Origin: Mytilus californianus
Lineage: Eukaryota
Reading direction: 5' to 3'
Assembly (NCBI RefSeq): GCF_021869535.1
Contig: NW_026262685.1
Span: 1,488,001-1,552,000 of the forward strand
DNA length: 64,000 nt
The notes beneath the pieces are model-generated. The model made no database searches and was not told the origin of the DNA. It was given only the letters and a program-made list of their open reading frames with translations. Shown one piece after another: positions 5,640 to 48,124 of the stretch. Every line of letters begins with the position of its first letter. Position 1 is the stretch's first letter. Position numbers and translations under genes: made by a program.

Positions 5640-8582
5640 TTTCAAGGTATATGTCGGAGAATTATGGGAGGTATGTGTCACATAGAGATATAGGGTATAT
5701 GTCACAAAGAGATGTGAGGTATATATTACAAAGAGATATAGGGTATATATTACAGAGAGATGCGTAAGGTATATGTCACAGGAATATATGGGGTATATGT
5801 CACAGAGAGATATAGTGTATATGTCACACAGAGATGTGGTGTATATGTCACAGAAATATGTAGGGATTATGTCACAAAAAGATGTGGGGTGTATGTTACA
5901 AAGAGAAGTGTGCAATGTGTCATAGAGGGATATGGAGTATATGTCACAGAGATTTGAGTAAATGTCACAAAGTGATATAAGGTTTATTCTACAGAGAGAT
6001 GGGATGAATATGTCACAGATATATGGACTATATCACTGAAAAATTTGAAGTAAGTGTAACAGAGAGATATGGATACAAGTCAGAGAGATATGATGAATAT
6101 GTCGCTGAAATGTGGGGACTATGTCATAGAGATGTAAGCTAAATGTCACAATTAGATGTGTTGAGTATATCACAAAGATGTGGGGTGTATGTTTCAGAGA
6201 GATGTGGGTTATATGTCACAGAAAGGTTTGGGGTATATGTTTCCGAGAGGTGTGGGTTATATGTCACAGAAAGGTTTGGGGTACATGTATATGTTTCAGA
6301 GAAGATTTGGTTATAGGCCAAAGAAATGTGGGTAATAGGTCACAGAGATGCAGGCTATATGTCACACAAATATGTTGGGTTATTTGTCACAGATAGGTTT
6401 GGGGTAAATGTCACATGAGAGATGTGGGTTATATGTTACAGAGAGGTTTGGGCTATACGTCACTGAGAGATGTTATATATATGTCACAGAGAGATGTGGA
6501 TTATATGTCACAGTTAAGGACGCTATATGTCACAAAGTGATGTGGGTTGTATGTCACATAGCAATGTTGGTTATATGTCACAGAGTAACATGGTTTATAT
6601 CTCACAGAGTAACGTGGTTTATATGTCACAGAGTAATGTGGGTTATATGTCACAGAGTAATGTGGGCTATATGTCACAAAGTGGTTGGGTAATATGTCAC
6701 AGAGTAATATGGGTTATATGTCACAGAGTAATGTGGGTTATATGTCACAGAGTAATGTGGGCTATATGTCACAAAGTGGTTGGGTAATATGTCACAGAGT
6801 AATATGGGTTATATGTCACAGAGTGATGTGGGTTATATGTCACAGAGTAATGTGTGCTGACTAAGATGGAGAGTTGTCTAATTGGCACTCATATCACATC
6901 TTCTTATATCTATATGTCACAAAGTGATTGGGTTATATGTCACAGAGTAATATGGATTATATTTCACAGAGTAATGTGGGTTATATGTCTCAGAGTAACG
7001 TGGGTTATATGACACAGAGTAACATGGGTTATATGTAACAGAGTGATGTGGGTTATATGTCACAGAATAATGTGGGTTATATGTCACAGAGTAACGTGGG
7101 TTATATTTCACAGAATAATGTGGGTTATATGTCCCAGAGATGTGTGTTATATGTCACAGAGATGTGGGTAATATGTCACAGAATAATGTGGGTTATATGT
7201 CACAGAGTAACGTGGGTTATATGTCACAGAGCAATGTGGGCTATATGTCACAAAGTGGTTGGGTAATATGTCACAGAGTAATATGGGTTATATGTCACAG
7301 AGTGATGTGGGTTATATGTCACAGAGTAATGTGTGCTGACTTGGATGGAGAGTTGTATCATTGGCACTCATACCACATCTTCTTATATCTATATGTCACA
7401 AAGTGATTGGGTTATATGTCACAGAGTAATATGGGTTATATGTCACAGAGTAATGTGGGTTATATGTCACAGAGTAATGTGGGCTATATGTCACAAAGTG
7501 GTTGGGTAATATGTCACAGAGTAATATGGGTTATATGTCACAGAGTGATGTGGGTTATATGTCACAGAGTGATGTGGGTTATATGTCACAGAGTAATGTG
7601 TGTTGACTTGAATGGAGAGTTGTCTAATTGGCACTCATACCACATCTTCTTATATCTATATGTCACAAAGTGATTGGGTTATATGTCACAGAGTAATATG
7701 GGTTATATGTAACAGAGTGATGTGGGTTATATGTCACAGAATAATGTGGGTTATATGTCACAGAGTAACGTGGGTTATATGTCACAGAATAATGTGGGTT
7801 ATATGTCCCAGAGATGTGGGTTATATGTCACAGATATGTGGGTTATATGTCACAGAATAATGTGGGTTATATGTCACAGAGTAACGTGGGTTATATGTCA
7901 CAGAGTAATGTGGGCTATATGTCACAAAGTGGTTGGGTAATATGTCACAGAGTAATATGGGTTATTTGTCACAGAGTGGTGTGGGTTATATGTCACAGAG
8001 TAATGTGTGCTGACTTGGATGGAGAGTTGTCTCATCGGCACTCATACCACATCTTCTTATATCTATATGTCACAAAGTGATTGGGTTATATGTCACAGAG
8101 TAATATGGGTTATATGACACAGAGTAATGTGGATTATATGTCTCAGAGTAACGAGGGTTATATGTCACAGAGTAACATGGGTTATATGTAACAGAGAAAT
8201 GTGGGTTATATGTCACAGAATAATGTGGGTTATATGTCACAGAGTAACGTGGGTTATATGTCACAGAATAATGTGGGTTATATGTCACAGAGATGTGGGT
8301 TATATGTCACAGAATAATGTGGGTTATATGTCACAGAGTAACGTGGGTTATATGTCACAGAATAATGTGGGTTATATGTACCAGAGTGATGTGGGTTATA
8401 TGTCACATAGAGATGTGGGTTATATGTACCACAGTGATGTGGGTTATATGTCACAGAGTGATGTGGGTTATATGTCACAGAGTAACGTGGGTTATATGTC
8501 ACAGAGTAACGTGGGTTATATGTCACAGAGATGTGTGTTATATGTCACAGAGATGTGGGGTATATCTCACAGAGAGATATGG
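5640..8582. repeat. 22-24 bp minisatellite (GTCACAGAGTAATGTGGGTTATAT) with higher-order structure
   Basis: About 2.9 kb of directly visible units, diverged on the left and homogeneous on the right. Four related non-unit inserts near 6865, 7344, 7611 and 8018. Confidence 0.95.
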
Positions 8583-9559
8583 GGTAGATATCAGAGTAAC
8601 AGTAACCCTTAAACATACAAATGAAAATAGAAAATGTTTATTGAACATATATATTAAACAGTATTTTCCACACAAAAACATAAGCTTTTCACAAGGTATA
8701 AAATAGGTCAAGATTCTTAAGACAAGTTCCACACATGAATTTAGGTCCGTTTTTAGTCTACAAGAAGTTATTCATATAATTAAGTATTGTTTTCGTTCCC
8801 TTGGTACCTGATAAAGTTTAATTGTTCCTCCTGTGAAAGTAAGTATTGAAATTTTCGTAAAGTCGTTTTGTTTTTAGCATTTGTCACTGATGTCTTTGAA
8901 CAAAAAATGCAAATCGCTATAGCAGTGCTGTACAGTTATCTTTTCAGCGTGGTTTGTTGTAGAAATGGAAAAGAAGGGATATGCTGTATTAATTTGTGAA
9001 TAAACAGATAGACATATTTGACAAACTTCCAAAAACAAAGGAACAGTGCTCGTTCATCTCAAAGTCACGGTGATTCAAAAGCTCGCCCCTCTTGGCAGCA
9101 CAGTTCATTGAGTATCCTGATTTAGCAGTTATTATCTACATGTAGCTTCTTTTGTGAACGATTTTATAAAAGTTTTCTTAATCAAATCTAAGATTTTTTG
9201 TAAAATTCTCAAAAGAGATAACAGATTAGAATAAAAGTTCTTTTGTCTAGTTTCTGAAAAAAATATGTAAATTGCAGTACTCAACAAAATATAAGGATGT
9301 GTGATATGAGTGCCAATAGAATATAGTTTATTGGAGGTCAATGTTAATGACATGGGTACAAAATTTGACCAACATTGCCAACTAAGCACACATGATATGA
9401 CCACTGCGGTCTCTTCCTACATAAAAGTATACAAAGACGTGGCGTTGGAAAGGATCATTTTTTGTGTAAAATATACCAAAACAAATGACAAATTCAGAAA
9501 TTTATACAAGGGGATGGACCACTTTTTAGATCAGCGGCCATAAAAGATCACAAAAGACA

Positions 9560-23170: not shown

Positions 23171-26127
23171 CTGAAAGTAAATAAAAGTCCAAACATTGTA
23201 AAATTCAGTCAGCTGCTTATTACTACCGGTAAAATGATTACAAGCTGAATTCAGTAATTTAAAAAAAAACATTTCCCGATCAATATTTCAATATTTTCTG
23301 CTTGAGAGTGAAATATTATTTATACCAATTCTACTTCTTTGATGCAGTTTAAGTTTGTATACAATATATCTTTGTGCTCATTGATCAATGCCTTTAAGCA
23401 CATATTTTACATGTCTGGTTGCTAAGTGTCGATGCTTATTTCTTATTGTTCTGATTGTTTTTTTGAATTTAATTTGTAAAATATCCTAGAGGAGTTTTCA
23501 TTGTTAGCAGGGTATATTAAGTCAGTATATTCCTGCATAGCGTACCAAACCGATACACCATTGCATTGTTCTGTCTTATCATTTACAAAAATAACAAAAT
23601 GTAAATAATCTGTTGGAAATTCCTGGAAAATTATATTTAATCAATTCAGTACAATTTGGTTTGCTCTCATCAATTTAATTGACTGTTTGATATTCATCAA
23701 ACAAAATAAAAATGTTAAGCTGTGATAGAAACAAAAGCATTTCCATTGTGTTGCAACAATAAAAGTAAGTTAACCATTTAACATTGAATTTCTTAGTTGA
23801 TCATGACATTTTTTTCAAGCCAACATTGTTGATGGTAACATATGTACAAGTATATGTGTTTTTATCAGAAGTCAATTTATGATTAAGCTGTGTCACAAGA
23901 AACATATTGTACAGAATAAAAAAGACAAAAATGTCAAAAACTTATTACAAAAACCAACTTTTTGTCATTTTCTCATTTTTCAAGCTTTTCCCTATTGGTA
24001 TATAATTTGGTGAAAGCTACAATTTATAATCACTTTACGGACAAAGTATGGTTTTATCATGCTTATAATAATGATGAATGGCACTATTCAGTATGAAAAA
24101 TGACTTTATTGAATTTATACTGCACTTGTAAGGTTTTCACATTTAAACTTTTTTTCCTTAATCTAAAGCAATCTATGGCAAATCAATTACAGTCCCTTTT
24201 AAAGGTGAACAATCTTTTAATTTTCAATCTAACTCCCAGCAACTTCCTGCTAAATTCAGATATTTTAAATCCTCTTACATCTTTTGTGGTGAGAATTTTG
24301 CTTGATAAAATATGATAATTTGTGTAATAACCAACATGTTTGTCAACAAAAACTTTCATTTGTCCAACCCCACATCTTGTAACAGGTTGGGTTCTATGAA
24401 CGATTTCCCGTTGATATTTCTAAAGAGGATTAGCATATATAAACATCACATGGCTCCAAAACTAACTATTAGGTAATGTTCTGGGGTCTTTTTCAAAGCT
24501 AAATCATTTAATCAAACTTTAATTTACATTTAGACAGCTGGCAAACAAACTTTCCTATCTATCATATTGTTAGAATATAATGGCCATTTTCATTTTGTTA
24601 TCAACACAGTGGTCACTTCTAAATTGATGGTTTTACACTAAAGGAAAGATTTCATATATTTCTAATTCAAGTTATTGTATTGTACATAAGAAAGAGAAAG
24701 AAGATTCCAAAGGGGTAATTGATAAGATGCAAAATACATGTATGTCCAAATTTAATACATTGTTGAGGAAAAACTTAACTTCTGGTCAACCCCTTTATGC
24801 TGTAAATACCACAGGAACAATCCGTGTTTTATTTGTTTTTTTAATTGTTTTGACAGAAGCCATTCCTCAAACCACAACAGTTGAGCTACATAATTCGTGT
24901 TTTAAACATCTTGTGTTCATCATTTCTGTCATCTAATGCCATATCATATATACAAAGCTCAGGGCTCTAGGTCATTAAACTTTATTCAGTACTCAAAATA
25001 CAAAATTTATGCTCGAAACACCAAATCCAGTATTTCGATTGGTTAGTTTTTATTCTGAGTATGATAATCATGCTCCAAATTGTTATGACGAAAGGCCTGT
25101 AATCACTTTCTTATACTCTTGACACTTATGTTGGAGTTATCAAACTTTTTTAATCACTTAAAAAAAACTGATTTTCCAGTTTAAATGTTGGTGGCCTTTC
25201 TTCAGGATCAAGTGGACAGAATTTTCTAAGTTTAAAGTTGAGATATGAAATTGGATTCATTTAACATGTAGAACACTGGATAAAAACTTAGTTATTGTTG
25301 AAAGAATTAAACATTCACACTTATTCATATTTTCTTTTAAAAAGTTAACAGGACTATTGGTACTCAATCAAATTTGATTTACTTGAAAACTCTATCAGAA
25401 TATATGAACTATAAATTGGCCAATTAAAACGAATTGTTGATCAAAACCTCACACATTATACTATATAATAATTATGATTTCCCCTGCAGGTGAGTAAATA
25501 AAATGGTTTTATTAAAACCTTACTTTATATCAAAAGTTCTAAAGATTCTTCAGTAAAAAAAACAACTTTAATTTAACTGTCTTTTATGGACATTTTACAT
25601 GTGAAAATAAACTTTTGCATCTAAAGACAGGTCAAAGGTTACACAGAATTGATCTGACAGTGAAAAGTTCACCTTACTGAGAAAAGTTTATATTACTGTT
25701 TTATTACCCTAATTAGGCTACCAGATACTAGACTGACAAATTCTATAAAATGTCTAGATAAACCAGTCTTATTAAAATTGATAGGTGTGAACTTAGCTAT
25801 TTAACAAGTGTAAATTGTTGTCTATTATAAGAGCAAAAAAATGTTAAATTCACTTAATTTTAAAATGAAGTTCAATATATATCTAAATAGTGCACATTTT
25901 CTGCAAATTTTAGATGCTTTAAAAATTGTTGAATTTAAATTGAATTTAAAGAATAGGTTAGAATAAAACTTCATGCAAAGACTGTTAATTAAATTCCAAA
26001 CCTACAGAAATCTTAAAATTAAATTGGAGTTAAATGTTAGGAGAAAAGCCAAACATGCCTAGACTGTTCCCCCTTGAACAAAATGTTTGTTAGATGTTAG
26101 GTGAATATAACGGGCAAGGAAACAAAC

Positions 26128-28830
26128 CTGTTTTAATGACTGCTGTGGTTTGGGACTACCCGATTCTGAATTAGCTATCATAAATATTCCAGAGTCTCTA
26201 TGATCATCTAACGAAAAACTCACTTCTTTTTTATCTCCACCACTTAATGTATTAGTATTATATCCATTTGGTAAATTGGTCTCTTTTGTCAATATGGATT
26301 TTTTATTGGTGTTAAGGTGTATAGTTTCTGAAATCTGAAATTCTTCCTTCCCTGGTGGTGGATAGTCTTTCATTAATTTATTATTGTCAACTCTCCGTAT
26401 GAGAAATATGATGACAATTATGGCTAATGATAAAACGATTGTTACACAAACTATTGTAATCACGATAAGGACATTCTGTCCAATACTTGCTTCAGACGAG
26501 GCTGATGTTTTTGTCAATTCTATCCTTATTTTAATCTCGGTACTGTTACTCCGCGGAGTAATACCGTGGTCCTGTACTTCAACAACTAATAAATAATCCT
26601 TTATTTCACTACTCTGAATGCTGTGTGCGAGAAAAATCTTTCCAGTATTGCTTTCAATAAAAAACAAATTATTGTCATTTCGTGACCGGATTGAAAAACT
26701 GAGAGATCCATTTGGTCCATTGTCAGGATCAAAGGCTTCTACTTTGGTGACAACAGAATTTGCTGGTGTTAAATGTGAGACTTTAATGGAGCCATTTCCC
26801 TGCACTGGATACAAAATCTGTGGTGAATTATCATTTATATCTAGAACCATTACTTGTATGTTAACTGTCGAGTTTAAAGATGGTGCTCCAAAATCTTCAG
26901 CCTTTACTTCAAATGTGTATAGATTTTTATACTCTCGGTTCAATATACCATTTGTTTGAATGGTTCCTGTAGATGGATCTATGTGGAAGGGTACTGCTCT
27001 GTTTCTAGACTTTATAGAATATTTAATTTTACCATTATCACTAATGTCATTGTCAGTGGCATATACCGTACCCACAAAAGTCTTTGATTGTAAATTTTCT
27101 TGAATTTTAAATTCATAACTGGTCTGATTAAAACGTGGTGTTTCATCATTTTCATCAAGAATGTGAAGTTCCACTGTTGCAGTTGAGGTAAATGCCTTTG
27201 TTTGTCCTCCATCCACAGCTAGAACTTGAAATGTATAAACATCCTGCATTTCTCTATCAAACGGTACTGTGGTTCTAATCACACCAGTGCTTGGGTCAGC
27301 ATAAAACTTGTCTGCATTACCCTGTTCTACATAATACCGAACTTGAGCGTTCTCTTCCTCGTCTTTGTCTGAAGCAGTAACTTTTGCTATGAAGATCCCT
27401 GTATGGTCACTCTCTACCATTGACTCATTGTAAAAACTTTTTAAAAATTCGGGGAAGTTATCATTTTCATCTATAATTTGAACAATAAAGCTGGACGTTG
27501 TTTTAAGTGGTTCTTTTCCCGAATCTTGACAATCAACAGTTACAACAAGTTCAATGTCCTTTTCTCTGTCTAAAACTTTATTAACCAACACTTTATATTC
27601 TGTTTGAGAACTGGACAGTTTAGAAAGTCTAAATGTGTTGTCACGGAGACTACAAGAAACAATACCATTGTTACCAGTATCTTTGTCTGTGACTCCAATG
27701 TAAGCAACGACAGTTCCATTAGGAGAATTCTCATTTGCTCTAGCTGTACTGCCACTTGATAACAAATTTATGTTGATTTCTGGAGGATTGTCGTTCACAT
27801 CAGTAACAGTAATTGTCAAGGCAACCTGACTGCTCTTGGGTGGTGTCCCTTTATCAGAAGCTTGAACGATAAGACTAAGTGGTGCCCCCTTTGTGTGAGA
27901 GAGATGTTCTATGACCGACAACTGACCTGTTGATTTATCAATGGCAAAGAAAGTTTGTGCATCACTTGAGGGTGATGATATCAAAGTGAACTCTACATCA
28001 CCATTCAAACCAGCATCATGATCCACCGCTGTGATGTTTAGAATTTTATTTGGTACAGATATATCTTCCGGCACAGTGATATCATATTGTTTACGACTAA
28101 ATATGGGTTTGTTGTCGTTTATATCAGTAACAGTCACGTTAATTGTCAACATACTACTTCTTTGTGGTGAACCTCCGTCTTTTGCCACCAGATAAACTTG
28201 ATAATGGCTCAGCACCTCTCTATCTACTGTCTGTTTGAGGAGGATAGAAACTTCAATATTTCCTGATAAACTATGGTCAAACTTTAAACCGAAAGTTCCG
28301 CTATCTGGTAAAAGTTCATACGTTTGTAAAGAGTTGTTATCACCCATATCTTTGTCAACGGCCCCTATTACTGGGTATGTTGTGTTAATGTCTGCATCTT
28401 CTGGAATGTTTAAAACAATGGATGACCGGCTAAATTCTGGTTTGTTATCATTTATGTCTTTTAAAGTTACATTAACATTTATCGGCTGGAAGAAAGTTCC
28501 ACTACTAGCACCAATACGGAGTTGAAGAAGACAACTTTTCTGAAAAGGACAAATTGTTTCTCTGTCTAATTTAGAATTTGTAGAAAGAGCACCATTGTTT
28601 TCATTTATTGTGAAATATGTTCCAACTGTTTTCAGAAAGCTATATCTCATATTGGCAAACTCATCAGCTGTAGCTATGGATGCTAATTTGCTTGCATCGG
28701 CAACATTGCCTAGATATAAAGGTGGTTCTTGTTCTTCTAAAATCTGATAAAATATTGTAATATCTGCAGCTCTAATGAACACAAATACTGTTGATAATAC
28801 TATTACTGTTACATATCTACACATTGCCAT
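26128..28830 (-). CDS. Protocadherin B large exon: signal peptide, 7 cadherin repeats, TM, proximal cytoplasmic tail (delta1 / PCDH9-PCDH11-like architecture)
   Basis: 901 codons. EC1 has DRETICPFQKSC (Cys-X5-Cys); six DxND(N/E)xP linkers plus a seventh repeat; hydrophobic VLIVITIVCVTIVLSLAIIVIIFLI; phase-0 donor CAG|gtttgt at 26127. Confidence 0.95.
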
Positions 28831-28942
28831 TGTCTTTTAGAAGTATTTCCAAAGATGTTTAAAATGTTTTTGCAATTCCTCACATCATTTATATGGAAAT
28901 GGAGATTCTTTACCCACACTGGACGACTTTCAATTTCTCAGT
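28831..28942 (-). other. 5'-UTR part of the protocadherin B large exon, implying upstream non-coding exon(s)
   Basis: Acceptor tttattgtttaatttcag ends at 28943; contains ATGATGTGA at 28880-28888. Confidence 0.6.
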
Positions 28943-31900
28943 CTGAAATTAAACAATAAAATGAACTTTAAATTGGCGATTTGTTTAAATGTATATCGAG
29001 CACAGTCATAGGTTCCTTTTGATTAGGTTTTAGTATAATGATACGGTATACCAAGGATTTGTATAGTGAGAAGGATTGGAATCTCGTGGACTATTTGCAT
29101 TGCCTGTATTGAAATAAGCTGCGTATGATGAGATTTTGCGAGATTTACCGTGATGCATCTCGTTAGTCGTTTTTCGTCCACCATTACAAGTTGAATTTAT
29201 GTCATTTCAAGATAAACTCGGCGTTTTGTAAGTATAATATAACAAAATTACATGATGTGATACTTTTAAGTGTTAAATTATGACAGTTCTGATTCAATAA
29301 ACAGTTTTTATCTTTACAAAACACATTGTCTGCATCTAAATATACTATGCATTTTATCTGTTGTTCATCGTAATAATCCCGCCCAAATAGGCGGTCCAAA
29401 CCACAACTTTAATCTCAATCTCCTCCTTCATAATAAGGATTTGTGTTCAGAAACTTGAATTATATGAAATAAATGTGTGTGGTGCGTGCATATTATAAAC
29501 TATATAGTGTAAGGAGCTTTCGTTGTTGTTACTTTAATGGTTATCTCAGACCAACCGTCAAAAATCGTCCCGCGTCAGTGCAAAAAAGGGTGGACTGATA
29601 AAATATCAATAAAGTGCCACAATCGGTCGATTTCAACACTAAAACGTAATTATATCAATTTATCATAGTTTATTTGTTGTACTTTCTAAAACATTTGGCA
29701 GTAAAATGATAACGTGTGATATTATCATATTTTCAAAATACCGCTACGGTTACTAGATGCATCCAAAAGTCGTTATTATGGGCGGGACCAAATTAACATA
29801 AATAAACTTCCTGTAGTCCCTCGAACGTGATGAAAAATGTTTACAGTAGAAAAAATAGTTTGCATCTGTCGTTTCATGGACATTTACACCAAAAGGTATT
29901 GCTTTTTCCTTTAGAATTGATATGAAAATGTACTGGGAAATTCCTTTATGCCTTCTAGGGTTTACAGAACCCTGCTTACGTTCACCACATCAACTGAGTA
30001 TATCATTATCATACAGTCATACTGCACATAGGCTACTGTCATAGGTGATAGCATATTTTGGCAGTAGTATAAAGTGAAAATATAGGGACACTATTAATTT
30101 ACAAGTTAAAGGCGTGTTCTTACTATCATATATTAAGACTGTCTATCTCTCCAACTTTTTGGTATACCTCAGGCCTGTACCAAAGATAACAGGAGATAGT
30201 TACATTTGTATATGTGTATATATGTGCTTAAAAGTGTGGGGGATAAGGGTACGATTTCAGTCCGACTAATTCAGTTAATGAAATAAAAAATATATATTGC
30301 CGTCTTCAGGATAAATTACAAGCGCTCGTCCCAGACCAGTATAATTTTTCTGAGGCTTAACTGCCCAAATGAATAAAAAGAGAAATTTTATGAAAGACTA
30401 TTTTTCAGGCTTTGTTGTCAAAAAGTGTTCTACAATACACAAAATCTCTAAATTAACACTCATAAACAACAAAAAAGAAAAGAACGGTCCATTCACATGT
30501 ACATGTATGGAGAATTTGAAAGTAAAATTAGGCACTTCATCAAAGAAATACCAAAATAGTCAAAAATTTTATGTTGTCATGGTCAAACATTTGATATTCT
30601 TGGGATGGCTACATGTCTACTAAAGTACATAATTAATCCTTGTTACCCCAATACAATCAACCGGTTATGTACTTGTATAGGATGCATAATGTGCCAATGC
30701 GGACTTTAAAAATCTGAACTTTTTCTGACCAGACTCCATATTCTGCATAAATTCATGTCTTGTATTTTATTATTTTTGTGATGTATTATGAACTGTGTTA
30801 TTTTGTTAATGTTCATATATATATATATATGTATACCATAAAACCCATGATAACTGGATTTAAATTTCAATAAAATACATATCCCAGCATTATTATAGTG
30901 AACATGTAAATTACATCTGTTTACATGGTTTAAACAGTAACAGATTATACATAACCCAGCAGTGACGAGTGCCCAATTATTCGTTTTTAAATTACTGCAA
31001 AATTCTCGAAATGTTATTTGATAAAATATAATTATTTAGCTTTTATATATGGACAGCTAGGAGAGAAGCTTACTCTTGATACATAAGTAATAAAATTTCA
31101 GTTACTGTGTATAATTGTTTAACATCATATTTGCATTCAGTTTTTTACTTTCAGATGTAAAAGATATTTTGTGTATTAATAGTACTTCTCTCTGAAGACA
31201 ATAGTTGGTTATGGCTGTGGATAATAATCAGGTAACTACATTATTAAAAATATAAAATAATACTGATACCAGAATTACTTTAAAATCATTATATTCAGAA
31301 TTTGTGCAAGAATCATACCAGTGTGCCACATCTCTTAATATTTTTTACAGAAATTCTTAGTTGAATTCTAGCCAGCTCTGACAGCTTTCAGCACTAGTAC
31401 TAGTACTGCCACAAAATGTAATTTTTAGATTCTTATTTGTTTTTTATTTGTAGTAGGCAGGTGTATTTTGTTTTACATGTAATGTTTTATTTTCTTTGCT
31501 TAGAAATTAAATGGATTAAAATTATAATTTTACAATATGGAAAATGTCAGGGAAACCCTAATTATATTTTATGTATTTTAGTCTTACAAAAAAAAAAATG
31601 TTTGTTATTTTCAGGATACCAAAGTTAAAGAAAGGAGATATGTTTCTTTGTGGTGAAAGTGCAAGAAATAACACCATATTCTGACTTACAAAATGATCAC
31701 TCATACTGCATGCAATACAGGGAAAGGCATCAAACCAAGCCTCTAGAAGACATACATTTGTAGAATGTATTTTCTATGATGTACACATCGCAGAGGATAC
31801 TTTATGTTCCAAAAAATCAAATACAAATTGTGTCAGCTCCTGTGACAAACTGAAGATGGAAGTTAACCAGAGTATGAAATCACCATTATCAATATGTAAA

Positions 31901-32194
31901 ATCCAACCAGTGACTATATATTTATTCAAATAGTGTCATGAATGGAATTAAAAAAGGACTTGGAAAATTAACATGTTTTAATATTGCTTTGTGTGTGTGA
32001 ATAAAATTTGTTAGCAAGAACAAACTTCTTTTATTACAAGACATCCAGAATACATGATGTCTTCATACATGTCATAGCAGGTACCAGCATTTCTGTGGTT
32101 GGGTGTTCCCAGATAGTTTAGTTTGTAACAATGTTCCATTTTTTGGTCTTTCATGCTTGGTTCATAAAGAATGTAAAAAAATATTTCATGTGCG

Positions 32195-32270
32195 TATAAA
32201 AATAAGGAGATGTGGTACGATTGCTATTAAGACAACTATCATGAGATCAAAGGACAAGGATGTAAACGAA
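32195..32270. mobile_element. Diverged family A copy nested in the P-like element
   Basis: ATAAAAATAAGGAGATGTGGTACGATTGCTATTAAGACAACT. Confidence 0.65.
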
Positions 32271-32689
32271 GACAGGTCAGTGTTCACTAAGATAGGTTTT
32301 CTAGGTACAAAGTAGGTACTTTTGAAAGTGGATAATCAATGGATTTATTGGGTCAATGGGATGAAGGTGGGGTGATGTGGGAATGAATATTTTAGCATGG
32401 TGAGAATTAGTAGAAGAAATAATGTTGCCCGTTCAAGATTGAAAATGAATAAGCTGCTGCATTTCTGCCTCACATTGAGCATGAAAAATTATTTAAAAAA
32501 GTGAAAATGAAGCTATGTGACATAAACAATCTGAGCAACAGCTAAAAATGAAATAATATTGACTATTTCATTTTGTGAAAAATCTGTCCAAGAGAAATCC
32601 TCCTGCCTTACCCCCTAAAAATGAAATGATTGTCCCCTTATACATGTATATGCTCTTAATGCTAATAAAAAATGTCAAATCTTTACCAA

Positions 32690-32865
32690 TATAAAAATAA
32701 GGAGATGTATGAATGCCAATGAGACAACTATCCATCAAATTCAAATGAAGTGGATGTAAGCAATTATAGGCAACTGTACAGCCTTCAACAACGAGAAAAA
32801 CCCATATTGTATAGTTGGCTCTAAAAGGCCACAGCGTGAAAAATGTGAAACAAATTATGAGTAGG
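32690..32865. mobile_element. Family A copy nested in the P-like element
   Basis: ATAAAAATAAGGAGATGTATGAATGCCAATGAGACAACTATCCATC...GCCTTCAACAACGAG...TAAAAGGCC. Confidence 0.75.
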
Positions 32866-34472
32866 GTGTATGACACAATAAGCAGATAACCCATCAAAGT
32901 TATTCGTAAAATGCTGTTAGTTGCTTGTGTTACTAATGTTTTTCACAAGGGAAATTTACTTTTACTTGCTATGGGTACAACCATTGATTTTAGGGTATGA
33001 ATGATACGTTCGTTTTTGAAGACCCTACATCAACTGTCAAGATGAAGAACAGGAATAAAAGCCATGTTCATTGATAATTTTCTATGTTTTCTATGTATTG
33101 TGTGAGATTTAGTCCCATGTACATGTACATTTACTCCATATCTTTTCAGTTTCTATTTTACTGTTGTTTATAATCATGAACTTATTTTTAACTTCCTGCC
33201 AGTCCTTCAATGAACTCAAACCTCTATAGTTCCAGTTTACACTCATGTATTTGCAGTTTGAACAGACGAGCATTCTTGAAAATCAATGAATTCATTTAAT
33301 TTCTCATTTGTTGCGGACCTTACATGTATATTGATTCTGTTAAATTTATTCATAACTTAACTATGATAAAATAAAACAACATACAGATAAAATTTGTATG
33401 GAGACTGACTATTCTTGAAGACTGTATGATTTCCTCTAACTGTCAATTATCTTGTGGTAGTTGGGTCAGTTTCATATACTAGACTACTACTAGAAGAAAG
33501 GACAAAGACAAGCTGCGAAAATAAATAATTGTTTTGACCTTCTCTTTGGGGTTATCTTAAACAGCTATTACTAGTATCATAAAGATGTGTTGGGCTACTC
33601 AAATTACGATCACAAGAAAAACAACAACAATGTCAACATAATTACGATAATTTTCGGCAACTGCCAAATGTAAACGACTATCAAAGTTTATTTTCCAGCT
33701 AAAGAGAGGTCCTCAATATGACATACTCAGAAGGAATCGTGATATCTTTGCGAATTAAAACAAAATATTGATCAAAGATGCTAAAACAAACAAAACCTAA
33801 CAACAAACAAGTCAGAAATGATTATCTTGCAATACACGCTGTTCAACCGGATATTTACTAACAGGCGCGTATAAATTTATAGTGGCGAGTACGCAACATC
33901 TCACGATACGCGAGAAGTGTCGATATACCGCGAGATTCCAATCCTTCTCACTATACAAATCCTTGGGTATACCAACATTTAATTCTAAATCTGTTGAAGT
34001 CGTACAAACAACGATACTAAGTGTTTAGACAAATTACAGGGTATGCATTTTAATCTCAGGTCCATAAAGAGATTTATTTGCGCCTGTATTGTTCCTTGCA
34101 CAAATATATTCAATGGACATTTATTTAATCTGGACTTTACTGTTTAAGAAACTTATAATCGATTTGAATTAAGAAAAGAAAGTTTATTTTTGTTATCTTT
34201 TACTTTTGATATATATTTATTCTGCAAGTTAAGGCTTTTATATTGATATAAAACGACTTTTAAAGGGAAAATATTCATGGTACAAATGTATGATATTCAA
34301 AGATCCATGAGTATTAAATATAAATAAGAATATCAAATGATTAAGGTGTTATTCTTTCTTCTGTAACAAAAGAATTGAATTAAAATTAAAAATTTAAATA
34401 ATTCTCTAGATCAAATTAAAAAAAACAACCTACCAGTTGCAATTAAACTATACATAACTATAACTGTATATA

Positions 34473-34530
34473 TTTGGTCTCTGGTGGAGAGTTGTCTCGT
34501 TGGCAATTATACCATTTTTTTTTTTTTTCA
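34473..34530. mobile_element. Short family A copy with T-tract, flanked by 14-15 bp direct repeats
   Basis: TATAACTGTATATA(T) at 34459-34473 and 34531-34545. Confidence 0.75.
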
Positions 34531-40888: not shown

Positions 40889-41688
40889 ATGTACAAGAAG
40901 AAATGACAACTGCAACATCGTTGTACATTTTCTGAGAGTAAGTGAAGTGTTATTATTTACAAATCAAAGGAACATTTCCATTCCAAATGTTCCAGAATTT
41001 ATGTGCTCCCGTATTGTAAGTTGTACATATAAAAATCCAGATGTTGTACTTATTGAAATTGCCAGTATTCAATAGTTATAAGTATTTAATGTATCAGTAC
41101 TACATTATACTGATAAACAGAAAAATATGTGTTTATAAATGTATTATCACCAAAAGAATTTCATGTCAACCAGATTTCACTATCTATATTAACAGAATGA
41201 CATGATGTCAAATGAAAATCTATATTTTCTTCCAAAAACAAAATAAAGCAAAAAATTAAAATAACCACTTTCTAAAGCATGAAGTTCAGGATCATCTTTT
41301 ACATGGAAAAGACAAATTTTATGTTTAAATTATTTCCAAATGGTCAATAAATTGGAGAAAAGTTGGCCATAAAATTGATACTAATCTCTGTCAGAAGACA
41401 TTTGAATGTTCTCAGCCTTAAAATGAAGCTTTTACACATTGTCATTAATAATCTGTGAAAAAGTATTCTGTTATTGTCCTTAATTATCTGAGGGGAAGAA
41501 ATAAAATATTTCATGAGTTTAGAGTAGAAAACCTGTGGGAAATAGTATTGAAATAGTTGTGTGTGTGACTCTCATTAAATTTTACACTTTATGCAAGAAT
41601 TAATGTCCCTATTCAAAATTATGATTTTGTTCCATTCAATTTTTTCATGTAATAATATTTTTGAAGAAAAGAAACTCAATTATAACAA

Positions 41689-43007
41689 TTATGGGAATTG
41701 TTGGTGACCTTCTCCTGTGGCTTAAAGATTACTTGTCGAACAGAAAACAAAGGGTTGTCATAAACGGAGTAGAATCTTCCTGGGCGGATGTAAATGCTGG
41801 AGTACCCCAGGGTTCAATTCTTGGGCCCTTGTTGTTCCTCATTTATATTAATGACATTATTAACGAAGTAAGCTGTAAGATTAAACTATTCGCGGACGAT
41901 ACATGCATCTATGCTGTTGTAGATAATCCACTAGTTTCATCGATTTCTTTACACTACAACTTGCGTAAAATAAATAACTGGGCGGATAAATGGTTAGTAA
42001 ATTTTAATCCGTCTAAGACAGAATCCATTGTATTCTCACGAAAAAGCGAACCAGATTATCATCCACCTTTGAATATGAATGGCGTCATAATAAAAAGAGT
42101 TCAAACTCATAAGCACTTAGGATTAACTTTCTCGAGTGATGGAACATGGAATCATCACATCGAAAAAATTACATCAAAGACATTACCCCGACTAAACTTA
42201 CTGCGTCGCCTAAAATTTAGGCTACCCGATCAGTTTAGAAACATACACCAGTATAGAACTCGTTACGCAAATAATTTTCCATCAGTACCCTGTCGAACTA
42301 CTTATTATATGAATAGTTTCCTTCCATCAACAGTTCGACTTTGGAATAGCCTTCCCCTAGATATAAAAAATGCTGGTTCTATCGCTCCACTAAAAGCCTT
42401 TCTTAAGTTAAATCATTCTATACCAAATTATTATTATGCAGGCAGTAGACTAGGTCAGATATATCATGCCCGAATCCGTACCGAGAGCAGTAGTCTTAGA
42501 GATCACTTGTATCAAAAAAATTTGGAATCAGACCCATTTTGTAAATGTAAACAGATAGAAACCTCGGAACACTTCCTTCTAAACTGTCCCATTTATCATC
42601 GAACTCGTGAAGCCCTTTATGTTAACCTAGTTGGTACACTTAACATAGATACGTTACTTTATGGTGATCCGAACATTACAGATATAGACAATCAAAACAA
42701 CTTTCTTATTGTTCAAGACTATATATTGAAAACTAAGAGATTCACAAAATAATTCTTGTTGGCTCAACAACATGTCACCCAATATCAAAAAATACTATCT
42801 GCATTATATGTTAATTTCCATTACATTTGATTTCTTTTTCTATGATATTATGTTATATGATTGTACATTTTCTGTCCATTGTAATTAATTTTGCCGTTCA
42901 AAAGGAGAGGAATTTGTATAAGTGACTTGTCACTTGTTTTCCAATCCATGTATTGTATTGATGTACATATTTATTTATCTGTTTCTAAATAAAATATTGT
43001 TTACACT
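41689..43007 (+). mobile_element. 5'-truncated non-LTR retrotransposon (CR1/L2 group) with partial RT, C-terminal CCHC-type motif and 3' UTR
   Basis: GVPQGSILGPLLFLIYINDI, KLFADDT, HKHLGLTF and C-terminal CKCKQIETSEHFLLNCP; AATAAA near 42988; 11-bp TSD AATTATAACAA at 41678-41688 and 43008-43018. Confidence 0.92.
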
Positions 43008-43530
43008 AATTATAACAAATTTCCTTTACCAAATCCTATTTGTAAAATATTTTATGTCGCACGTTAAACTTCTGTACACCATTATATTCACACCTAATTC
43101 AAAATGTTTATATTTAATGATACAAACATGACCGTAACAACTTTTTAATTTGTGAAAAATTCTTTTTAACAGTCAGAATATAAGTGCATTGAAATTCAGC
43201 TACAATTGACTGAACCCACAGTAAGAAATAACGGGATCTTCTTAAAATATTTTTCACTATTAATGCAAATCTACTTTCTAACATGACATTTAATTTATTG
43301 GAAAAGATTAATTCTAACCCAATATTAACTGTTTTTAAGAGGTTTATGTAAAATGACATCATTGCTGACTTCACAATGAATCAATTTTTGACAACTAATT
43401 TAAACATATGAAGTAAAGAAATCATTCTGATTGCCCACAGTGTTCTTACATTAATTTTCATAAATCAATTTTACAACAAATATCATCTTTGGACTCAGTG
43501 AAAAAAACTCAATCAAAGTATAAACTAAGG

Positions 43531-43568
43531 CAAGGATTTGTATAGTGAGAACACTATACAAATCCTTG
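43531..43568. mobile_element. 38-bp remnant of the P-like family (21 bp left TIR + 17 bp right TIR)
   Basis: CAAGGATTTGTATAGTGAGAA + CACTATACAAATCCTTG; 7-bp TSD ACTAAGG at 43524-43530 and 43569-43575. Confidence 0.85.
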
Positions 43569-43914
43569 ACTAAGGTCATGGTATGTAAAACTGTGACGAA
43601 GATTAAGAGTGAGCAAAATCAACAGAATGAAATCTGTTGTTTAAGTTTACACTTTCTAAGGGAAGTCTAGATCATTCTGTGTAAGATCTTTTGAGATCAA
43701 CAAAGATGATTAGTATTACCTAAAAAGTTTATGACAATACTTAAGGAAAAGTACTGTAGCACGACTGCTTAAAAGTCATTTCTGGACTGGAAAAAATCTT
43801 CTCTTACAAGCTACTCTGTGATATCACTTACCAATCAGCGAATCAATTCATCCTGAAATATGGTTTTGACAAGCGTGGTATGCATTTTAACAACAAAACA
43901 TAGGCTTCACTTAC

Positions 43915-47000: not shown

Positions 47001-47085
47001 GCTTTAAAAGAAGTGTGTTTTGCACGCTTGGAAAATGGTTGACAACTATGGATGGACGACCCCTAAATAAATATAAATATGAAAA

Positions 47086-47135
47086 CTAGGATTTGTATAG
47101 TATTGTACTATAGTATTGTACTATACAAATCCTTG
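47086..47135. mobile_element. 50-bp remnant of the P-like family (16 + 16 bp TIR ends with 18-bp filler)
   Basis: CTAGGATTTGTATAGT + ATTGTACTATAGTATTGT + ACTATACAAATCCTTG; flanks ATGAAAA / ATGAAAG (6/7 match). Confidence 0.8.
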
Positions 47136-48124
47136 ATGAAAGCAGTTTTCATACTTATGTTAAAATAGGACTGCTACTAAATTATCAAAAACTTTTATCA
47201 ACTTTGACTGTTTGAATGGGCTACTTTTCCATGGTCAACGTTTGGTAACTTTAAAAGAGGATAAAGAGATAATACCTGTTATGATAAAAGTACTGATAGT
47301 ACTGTTGACTTAGTACCTTTACTTAGCATCTTGTTACTAATCCTTAGTTAATATTTCTTTATATTATCCACAGGATTATTCACCAATTATCTACTTCAGC
47401 CCTAGTCATCTTGACATTAAATAGATTTATAAACAAGCCATCTTGTACTGATAAGTTGTCTAAGAACAAATGCAAACTTTTTTAAATCTTAAATTTGTTT
47501 TCTGTCTTATTAGGGTGTTGATTTTACTGCACACTTTTATAACCTTGTTTACTGTAAACATTAGGGATTACTGCCTTAGTTGAGTATTGAGGTTCTTTTA
47601 AACAGTATTTTGAGTTTCATAAACTGGTGGTGACATTGATTTTAGTAAATATCATGCCATTTAATTAAGCTTTAAATTTCTTTTGTAAATTCAAGTAAAA
47701 AATAAGAAATAAAACCCTTTCATAATAAAAATGTTATATTTTCCCTTATTGTATTATTCTTGTGATGTGCTTCTATAATTATTGGTCTCATAAAGAGATA
47801 TACTAAATGATGTTATTTGGTAATCTTAACTAGGTGCATGGGTTGCAATCTGCATTTTGTGATTTTCTGTCAGCTTTAATGTTTGAGTAAAAAAACAAAA
47901 TCCCTATACATTGTAATTGCCTTTAATCCATAACTTTAGGATCAGATCAAACCCCTCAATAAATCATTTATAACTAATCATAATGTATACTACAAAACAC
48001 AGTGCCAATAATATATGTACAAAGCCTGGTAAATGTTGGGAATCTGCATTGGACTAAATTTACAAGTTTATGTATAAAACTAAATAAAACATGCATTGGG
48101 ATAAATTTACATGTTTATTTATAA

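Follow-up and report, generated by a model that had tools for sequence, protein, structure and literature searches.

A 4914-bp transposable element lies in the 5' untranslated region (UTR) intron of a protocadherin gene in Mytilus californianus. It was found in a 64,000-nt stretch of the 1.65-Gb assembly GCF_021869535.1 (contig NW_026262685.1, here C105:1488001-1552000), which we call the window; labels beginning with C denote contigs of that assembly, and coordinates without a label are window positions. The element is very probably a non-autonomous member of a cut-and-paste transposon family of the P superfamily. Such members would be moved in trans by a P/THAP9-type transposase from longer copies with the same ends, would insert by a 7-bp staggered cut, and would leave scars on excision, and the window copy would be a recent arrival in the protocadherin intron. 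Direct observations concern the anatomy of the element, the target-site duplications, the copy family, an empty allele, the domains and position of a transposase frame, the scars, and a target motif. From these we infer the identity of the enzyme that moves the family, where the inner cut lies, what the CGAGAT motifs do, and any activity today.

The element spans 29052 to 33965 and is given in the plus orientation, matching the direction in which the transposase frame of the candidate autonomous copy described below is read. Its 35-nt terminal inverted repeats, at 29052 to 29086 (+) and 33931 to 33965 (-), match at every position, with none expected in shuffled sequence. The complementarity of the two ends continues to 44 nt at 93% and then stops. 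The tips read CAAGG...CCTTG, and identical copies of the 7-bp duplication GGTATAC flank the element at 29045 to 29051 and 33966 to 33972. A preliminary description of this stretch, made from the sequence alone, had reported 35 of 35 matching repeats, the 7-bp duplication, and CA...TG tips, and all three were borne out. There are five occurrences of the hexamer CGAGAT or its complement ATCTCG, all less than 110 nt from an end of the element, and none in the 4.7-kb interior. Three of these hexamers cluster at 29081 to 29162 (element positions 30, 88, and 106), and we consider them candidate binding sites for the transposase.

The longest open frame in the element has 124 amino acids (aa). Of the 25 frames that reach 45 aa, the 20 longest had no Pfam match at E < 0.03. 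The window copy lacks coding capacity. The same description had called the copy intact. Both ends are indeed intact and the duplication is perfect, but the copy is gene-less and about 88 bp short. The missing sequence is present in all other 4.9-kb copies, at element position 1491 to 1495 (window 30542 to 30546), and the loss, with a 5-bp overlap at the breakpoint, is consistent with a microhomology deletion. Pieces of an abundant mussel repeat, with a contig depth 1e4 to 1e5 times that of the flank in all sequencing runs, are found inside the element at 32195 to 33324. A second arm of this repeat lies inverted just beyond the element, at 34482 to 34526. A hydrophobic frame of 109 to 153 aa recurs in many copies (109 to 124 aa in the window copy); we rejected it as a gene because it sits in this very high-copy repeat.

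The preliminary description had proposed a genome search for the 35-nt end. It returned 150 sites at two or fewer mismatches, and the reversed control returned none; the end has no mismatch in at least 69 places. We read 20 paired copies and 30 end regions, which yielded 37 distinct elements or scars with both ends. The duplication was 7 bp long in all 37 (31 perfect, five with one mismatch, and one with two), and an 8-bp duplication, as made by hAT elements, was found in 0 of the 37. The CAAGG...CCTTG tips were likewise common to this set, with a single CTAGG variant. The usual unit is about 4.9 kb long. Ten un-nested copies form a star-like set with 1.0 to 3.1% divergence (substitutions, mean 2.3%), and the window copy is 2.4 to 2.8% from every other un-nested 4.9-kb copy. 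The left subterminal stretch at 29114 to 29152 (+) is present at 35 left ends of the 4.9-kb family.

Many shorter copies, of 54 to 1500 bp, are internal deletions. Copies of 6 to 10 kb proved to be the 4.9-kb unit interrupted by retroelements (copies L033, L031, and L034) or by a 121-bp tandem expansion (L035). We rejected these as autonomous elements because their long frames are nested retroelement genes or a tandem array; the nested genes are a gag-pol-like gene of 1357 aa in L033 and the reverse transcriptase of long interspersed nuclear elements (LINEs) in L031 and L034. L010 was also rejected, as a LINE has inserted 86 bp inside one of its ends. A second non-coding family (L049, C121:63037534-63041635) is 4.1 kb long and resembles the 4.9-kb family only over about 110 nt at each end (78%). 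Its end variant, with A at position 17, occurs 31 times in the genome. In L035 (C2:23137001-23144714), element positions 102 to 222 have grown into about 20 head-to-tail 121-bp units with 95 to 98% identity (L035:5294-7814). This array is a subterminal transposon piece turning into a small satellite. At C101:1932211, 1942773, and 1953581, three like-oriented ends are spaced about 10.7 kb apart, and only the last is paired (1958448); they may have arisen by tandem duplication of a segment with an element end in it.

Two more sites in the window carry the family ends; the outermost 19 nt are repeated at both. The first site (43524 to 43575) consists of ACTAAGG, 21 nt of the left end, 17 nt of the right end, and ACTAAGG, which places 38 bp (43531 to 43568) between identical duplication copies. 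The second (47079 to 47142) consists of ATGAAAA, about 17 nt of the left end with one mismatch (CTAGG at the tip), a filler duplicated locally, 16 nt of the right end, and ATGAAAG; here 50 bp (47086 to 47135) lie between copies that differ at one position. The preliminary description had correctly reported both sites as short stubs, each with its own 7-bp duplication. They are better read as excision scars of former insertions than as short mobile copies.

The scar pattern is abundant. We searched for 13 nt of each tip with 0 to 30 nt between them, so that 13 nt is the floor for the retained length, and found 1044 sites in the genome and none with the reversed control. In the first 27 distinct scars, which were tabulated by hand, the retained end was 13 to 21 nt long on 52 of 54 sides, with a mode of 16 to 17 nt and outliers of 23 and 38 nt. 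The junctions are diverse, and short fillers are frequent. Amplification of a mini-element is disfavored because the junctions are diverse and because about 1000 scars stand against about 75 full elements. The enzymes of hAT, Mutator, and Transib form hairpins, and those of Tc1/mariner cut 2 to 3 nt in; the scar lengths do not fit either kind of enzyme. They do fit donor sites that were end-joined after a long staggered cut with a putative inner position. In this process one strand would be cut at the element tip and the other probably about 17 to 21 nt inside the end, and end joining would leave both 7-bp copies with about 13 to 21 nt of each end. The window scars at 43.5 and 47.1 kb would be such remains. 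The fly P element is cut 17 nt within its end (PMC7776569, PMC10983969).

Two side observations concern scar sites. At L018:1455-1577 (C57:25944731 region), adjacent scars of 32 and 70 bp share TTCTAGG-like duplications, as if one target had been struck twice. Just upstream of the first window scar is a LINE-type fragment, an RVT_1 frame of 363 aa at 41661 to 42752 (+) (2.7e-12).

Target choice is also recorded in the insertions. In 31 reconstructed empty sites, position -3 from the duplication is T in 27 (p = 2e-9) and position +3 is A in 23 (p = 8e-6), and both p values survive correction for 108 tests. The resulting motif, TNN[7]NNA, is palindromic and covers 3 + 7 + 3 = 13 bp, and the window insertion site (T-AC-GGTATAC-CA-A) matches it. 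We suggest that insertion would occur through a 7-bp staggered cut in this weakly palindromic TNN[N7]NNA target, duplicating the 7 bp. The target of the fly P element is a palindromic 14-bp motif with a 3 + 8 + 3 layout (PMC2577343), and 7-bp duplications typify the P-superfamily members 1360 and Galileo (PMC3698922).

The three family sites of the window lie within 18.1 kb, as had been noted and attributed to local hopping or a target hotspot. The clustering itself stands. With about 1120 sites in 1.65 Gb, the probability of finding two more within 18 kb of a given site is 3e-4, but about 0.3 such triples are expected by chance across the genome. On contig C1, 3 of the 49 listed scar spacings are below 25 kb, with 0.9 expected, which alone is not significant. 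The P element does hop locally (PMC7776569); for the mussel family, local hopping is only suggestive.

A whole-genome profile search for PF21787, the N-terminal half of the P/THAP9 RNase H domain, gave 51 matches. The top match (4.8e-19) is at C165:50973932-50974399 (+) and falls within the longest open frame, of 893 aa. The same frame contains PF21788, the GTP-binding insertion domain (50974484-50974837, 5.1e-18), and PF21789, the C-terminal part of RNase H (50975090-50975170, 2.3e-4). All three domains score above the Pfam cut-offs and follow one another without a stop codon in the order found in P transposase. According to a review, the GTP-binding insertion domain is known solely from P transposase (PMC7776569). 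Perfect 35-nt ends bracket the frame at 50966354 (+) and 50979344 (-), 12,991 bp apart and in the right orientation. At the right end, 42 nt (50979268-50979309) plus the 35-nt repeat make 77 nt identical to the window element, whose right subterminal stretch (33889 to 33930, +) has 0 mismatches to the right end here and at C121:88927206. This copy is not a 4.9-kb unit with an insert, because it is missing among the 39 regions that best match the full 4.9-kb unit, and known nested copies are listed there.

A second related frame, of 862 aa, lies at C121:88886076 (+). An end without the left subterminal stretch lies upstream at 88864852 (+), and the right subterminal stretch and end lie downstream at 88927206 to 88927282, in the same order and orientation as in C165. 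Because its ends spread over 62 kb, this locus must be rearranged or heavily invaded. We characterized the C165 and C121 loci from coordinates and profile scores alone. The 13-kb C165 copy is the best candidate for the autonomous master of the family, and the 893-aa frame would be its enzyme. Five other P-type frames of 393 to 462 aa (C57:23841960, C35:14211185, C110:39510728, C121:69837019, and C132:103009597) are near-identical and carry the RNase H N-terminal and GTP-binding domains at nearly equal scores; this pattern suggests a separate, young, multi-copy P-like element.

We considered that the family might belong to another superfamily (hAT, Mutator, or unclassified) and that the C165 frame might be an unrelated P element nested in a family copy. 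The C165 copy is 13 kb long with a frame of just about 2.7 kb, its left subterminal sequence differs from that of the 4.9-kb family, and nested insertions are frequent in the family. However, with about 51 P-type matches in a 1.65-Gb genome that contains about 0.4 Mb of family sequence, the chance that one of them falls inside the family is about 1%, and the match at C165 is in the frame that is both best-scoring and longest. The C121 locus repeats the order of end, frame, common right subterminal stretch, and end. Because two loci agree and the chance is about 1%, a nested passenger is unlikely.

The known properties of other superfamilies also bear on this alternative. hAT elements make 8-bp duplications, Mutator-like elements (MULEs) combine 9- to 10-bp duplications with long inverted ends, and Galileo has very long, foldback-like ends. 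We rejected hAT because the duplications are 7 bp and the scars keep 13 to 21 nt of each end, whereas hAT scars are short and without ends. Mutator was rejected because of the 7-bp duplications and the 35- to 44-nt ends, and the Galileo family because the complementarity ends after 44 nt. Scars of 13 to 21 nt are unlike the products of hairpin-forming or 2- to 3-nt-cutting enzymes. We therefore regard a different superfamily as highly improbable. The P-superfamily assignment made in the preliminary description survived the test of duplication length, and a non-P autonomous relative was not found; the only transposase found between family ends is the P-type frame in C165. In agreement with the P superfamily, we found a split RNase H domain with a GTP-binding insertion (seen as coordinates and scores), 7-bp duplications, long-cut scars, and CA...TG tips.

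Several observations weigh against the P-type reading with C165 as the master copy. The C121 ends, at 62 kb apart, are too distant for a simple element, and the left subterminal stretch of the 4.9-kb family was not found at the C165 or C121 left ends at up to three mismatches. No match to THAP (PF05485), the N-terminal C2CH DNA-binding domain of the superfamily, fell in C165:50966354-50979344 among the 150 of 949 candidates scored, a scope that does not bear on this copy; 6.8 kb of the copy lie to the left of the frame. PF12017 and PF12596 matched nothing in this genome, and they also matched nothing in the control genomes, so their absence is uninformative. The related P-type frames at C154:102804818 and C131:585868 have no listed end nearby, and none of the 31 hits of the variant end with A at position 17 is beside either frame. 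Finally, the 2.3% divergence among copies indicates that the burst itself is not very young.

On the P-type reading, the mussel element would keep only what the enzyme needs, namely, the 35-nt inverted ends and about 100 nt of subterminal sequence with the CGAGAT repeats. It would be mobilized in trans by a P/THAP9-type transposase with an RNase H core split by a GTP-binding insertion domain, supplied by longer copies with the same ends, of which the 13-kb C165 copy is the best candidate.

To date the window insertion, we compared contigs of four public runs with positions 28400 to 34300. Two contigs from the same species and from different studies, X1 (record 1, 99% alike) and X2 (record 16), join 29044 directly to 33966. 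A contig from a sister species, X11 (record 8, about 97 to 98% alike), makes the same join. These empty-site contigs align without a gap over 28400 to 29044 and 33966 to 34300 and contain a single GGTATAC, the copy at 33966 to 33972, with no remnant of an end. In X1, the empty-site contig has the full depth of the flank. X2 may derive from the assembled individual, which would then be heterozygous. The empty-site contigs represent the pre-insertion allele and not an excision product. It follows that the insertion either is polymorphic for presence and absence or occurs solely on the assembled haplotype, and the proposed recent mobility is seen directly in other individuals.

Alternatively, the joined contigs could be the outcome of precise deletion or excision at a later time, or of a collapse in assembly. 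They come from short-read assemblies, which break at repeats, and among the rows shown no contig bridges the filled junction. However, excision in this family leaves both copies and 26 to 45 nt, and the junction here has a single GGTATAC with nothing left of either end. Three runs, each from a separate study and one of them from another species, show the identical junction, and a collapse is unable to yield a precise single-copy target site. We give this explanation almost no credence.

Contig depths give rough figures for the abundance of the family. Over the unique parts of the element, depth is about 20 to 25 times that of the flank in M. californianus, compared with about 5 times in the sister species. 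At the ends the figure rises to about 100 times for each species, with about 90 times as a further estimate for the sister species. Since the sister species also has the family and its scars in abundance, both predate the species split. The 4.9-kb unit has expanded more in M. californianus than in the sister species.

These ages raise the possibility that the P-type identity is right but the family is extinct, with the insertion an old polymorphism in a very large and highly heterozygous population and the 893-aa frame non-functional. The divergence of copies by 1.0 to 3.1%, the distance of 2.4 to 2.8% between the window copy and all others, and the abundance of ends in the sister species, which makes the family older than the split, all favor this view. 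On the other side, the empty allele still segregates or the insertion is private to the assembled individual, at least 69 sites keep perfect ends, and the 893-aa frame is stop-free across three domains. We consider extinction possible but rather unlikely. The strongest form of the P-type reading is a still-active bivalve system with an intact C165 transposase, a donor cut that reaches about 20 nt into the element (deeper than the 17 nt of the fly), and its own palindromic 13-bp target, and we hold it only tentatively, as an attractive but doubtful proposal. On the main P-type reading, the copy at 29052 to 33965 would have entered the protocadherin 5'-UTR intron recently, with an uninterrupted allele persisting in the species.

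The protocadherin gene is on the minus strand. Its large exon, with part of the 5' UTR and the AG acceptor, covers 26059 to 28944, as judged from the frame, its domains, and an RNA-type contig. The frame of 923 aa (26059 to 28830) encodes a signal peptide, a Cadherin_2 domain, and six cadherin repeats, and its ATG is at 28830. The AG acceptor at 28944 to 28943 follows a pyrimidine tract. A contig of run X9, which is apparently from RNA, tracks the exon to 28944 and then continues with 152 letters that are absent from 28945 to 34300. This break is compatible with a splice acceptor in use and an upstream exon that lies further off. The element is 102 to 109 bp upstream of the acceptor, in agreement with an earlier estimate of about 107 bp, and about 220 bp upstream of the ATG. 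If its orientation follows the transposase frame, it would be antisense to the protocadherin gene. Elsewhere in the window, a 161-aa frame at 8127 to 8612 (+) has a sub-cut-off match to the 5-fold beta-flower family PF21785 (6.9e-8, 32.8 versus 38 bits).

The mussel family shares many properties with the P element of Drosophila melanogaster. Both are cut-and-paste elements with CA...TG tips and inverted ends of about 31 to 35 nt, and both are associated with a transposase whose RNase H core is split by a GTP-binding insertion domain. Both have many internally deleted non-autonomous copies, donor scars that keep about 17 nt of each end, and a palindromic target motif that extends 3 bp past the duplication (PMC7776569, PMC2577343). 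The fly P element also hops locally and prefers the 5' regions of genes (PMC7776569, PMC2577343). However, the mussel duplication is 7 bp rather than 8 bp, the target is TNN[7]NNA rather than ATRGTCCGGACWAT, and the scars keep up to 20 to 21 nt, compared with the 17-nt cut in the fly. The mussel ends have no sequence similarity to those of the fly element. The helix-turn-helix (PF12017) and C-terminal (PF12596) domains were not detected in the mussel genome, and no THAP match fell in the C165 copy among the 150 of 949 candidates scored. The mussel non-autonomous unit is 4.9 kb of unrelated filler and not a simple internal deletion.

Other members of the superfamily are closer in some of these respects. 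The Drosophila elements 1360 (Hoppel/ProtoP) and Galileo belong to the P superfamily and make 7-bp duplications (PMC3698922), but the inverted ends of Galileo are hundreds of bases long, compared with 35 to 44 nt in the mussel. BuT5, a miniature inverted-repeat transposable element of the Drosophila repleta group, is a non-coding element that shares only its ends with a divergent P-type master (PMC3698922). As in the mussel, the sharing is unequal between the 5' and 3' ends, with about 96 bp and about 260 bp in BuT5 (PMC3698922). However, BuT5 is about 1 kb long with 3-bp inverted ends and 8- to 9-bp duplications, whereas the mussel element is 4.9 kb long with 35-nt ends and 7-bp duplications.

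To our knowledge, complete P-type transposition, with excision and reinsertion, has been documented essentially only in Drosophila. Zebrafish Pdre2/THAP9, a P-type system from outside the insects, has a single full-length gene accompanied by many copies with internal deletions (PMC10983969). Its excision has been shown experimentally, but zebrafish THAP9 did not integrate in assays (PMC10983969). Pdre2 differs from the mussel family in that its ends are 13 bp long, its duplications are 8 bp long, and forward transposition was not observed (PMC10983969). The segregating insertion and the more than 1000 scars argue for complete natural transposition in the mussel, unlike Pdre2. Our literature search found no description of P-type elements in Mytilus. 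The superfamily itself is known from many animals, and the mussel family is a further member.

The value of this family is that it offers a natural record of P-type excision and insertion outside insects, together with a possibly intact transposase. The scars account for an abundant class of 29- to 54-bp near-palindromes in the genome annotation. The window insertion is a presence/absence variant 0.1 kb from a protocadherin acceptor, and it could serve as a marker and be examined for an influence on the expression of that gene. The family brings together a segregating insertion, more than 1000 scars, a clear target motif, and a transposase frame that is apparently open and has the P-specific GTP-binding domain. 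It is natural material for studying how the P mechanism varies in the length of the duplication, in how deep the staggered cut reaches, and in the choice of target, and it may seed a bivalve transgenesis vector. If it is still active, it would be the first P-superfamily element documented to transpose naturally in a mollusc, and it would be a candidate tool for gene transfer in bivalves.

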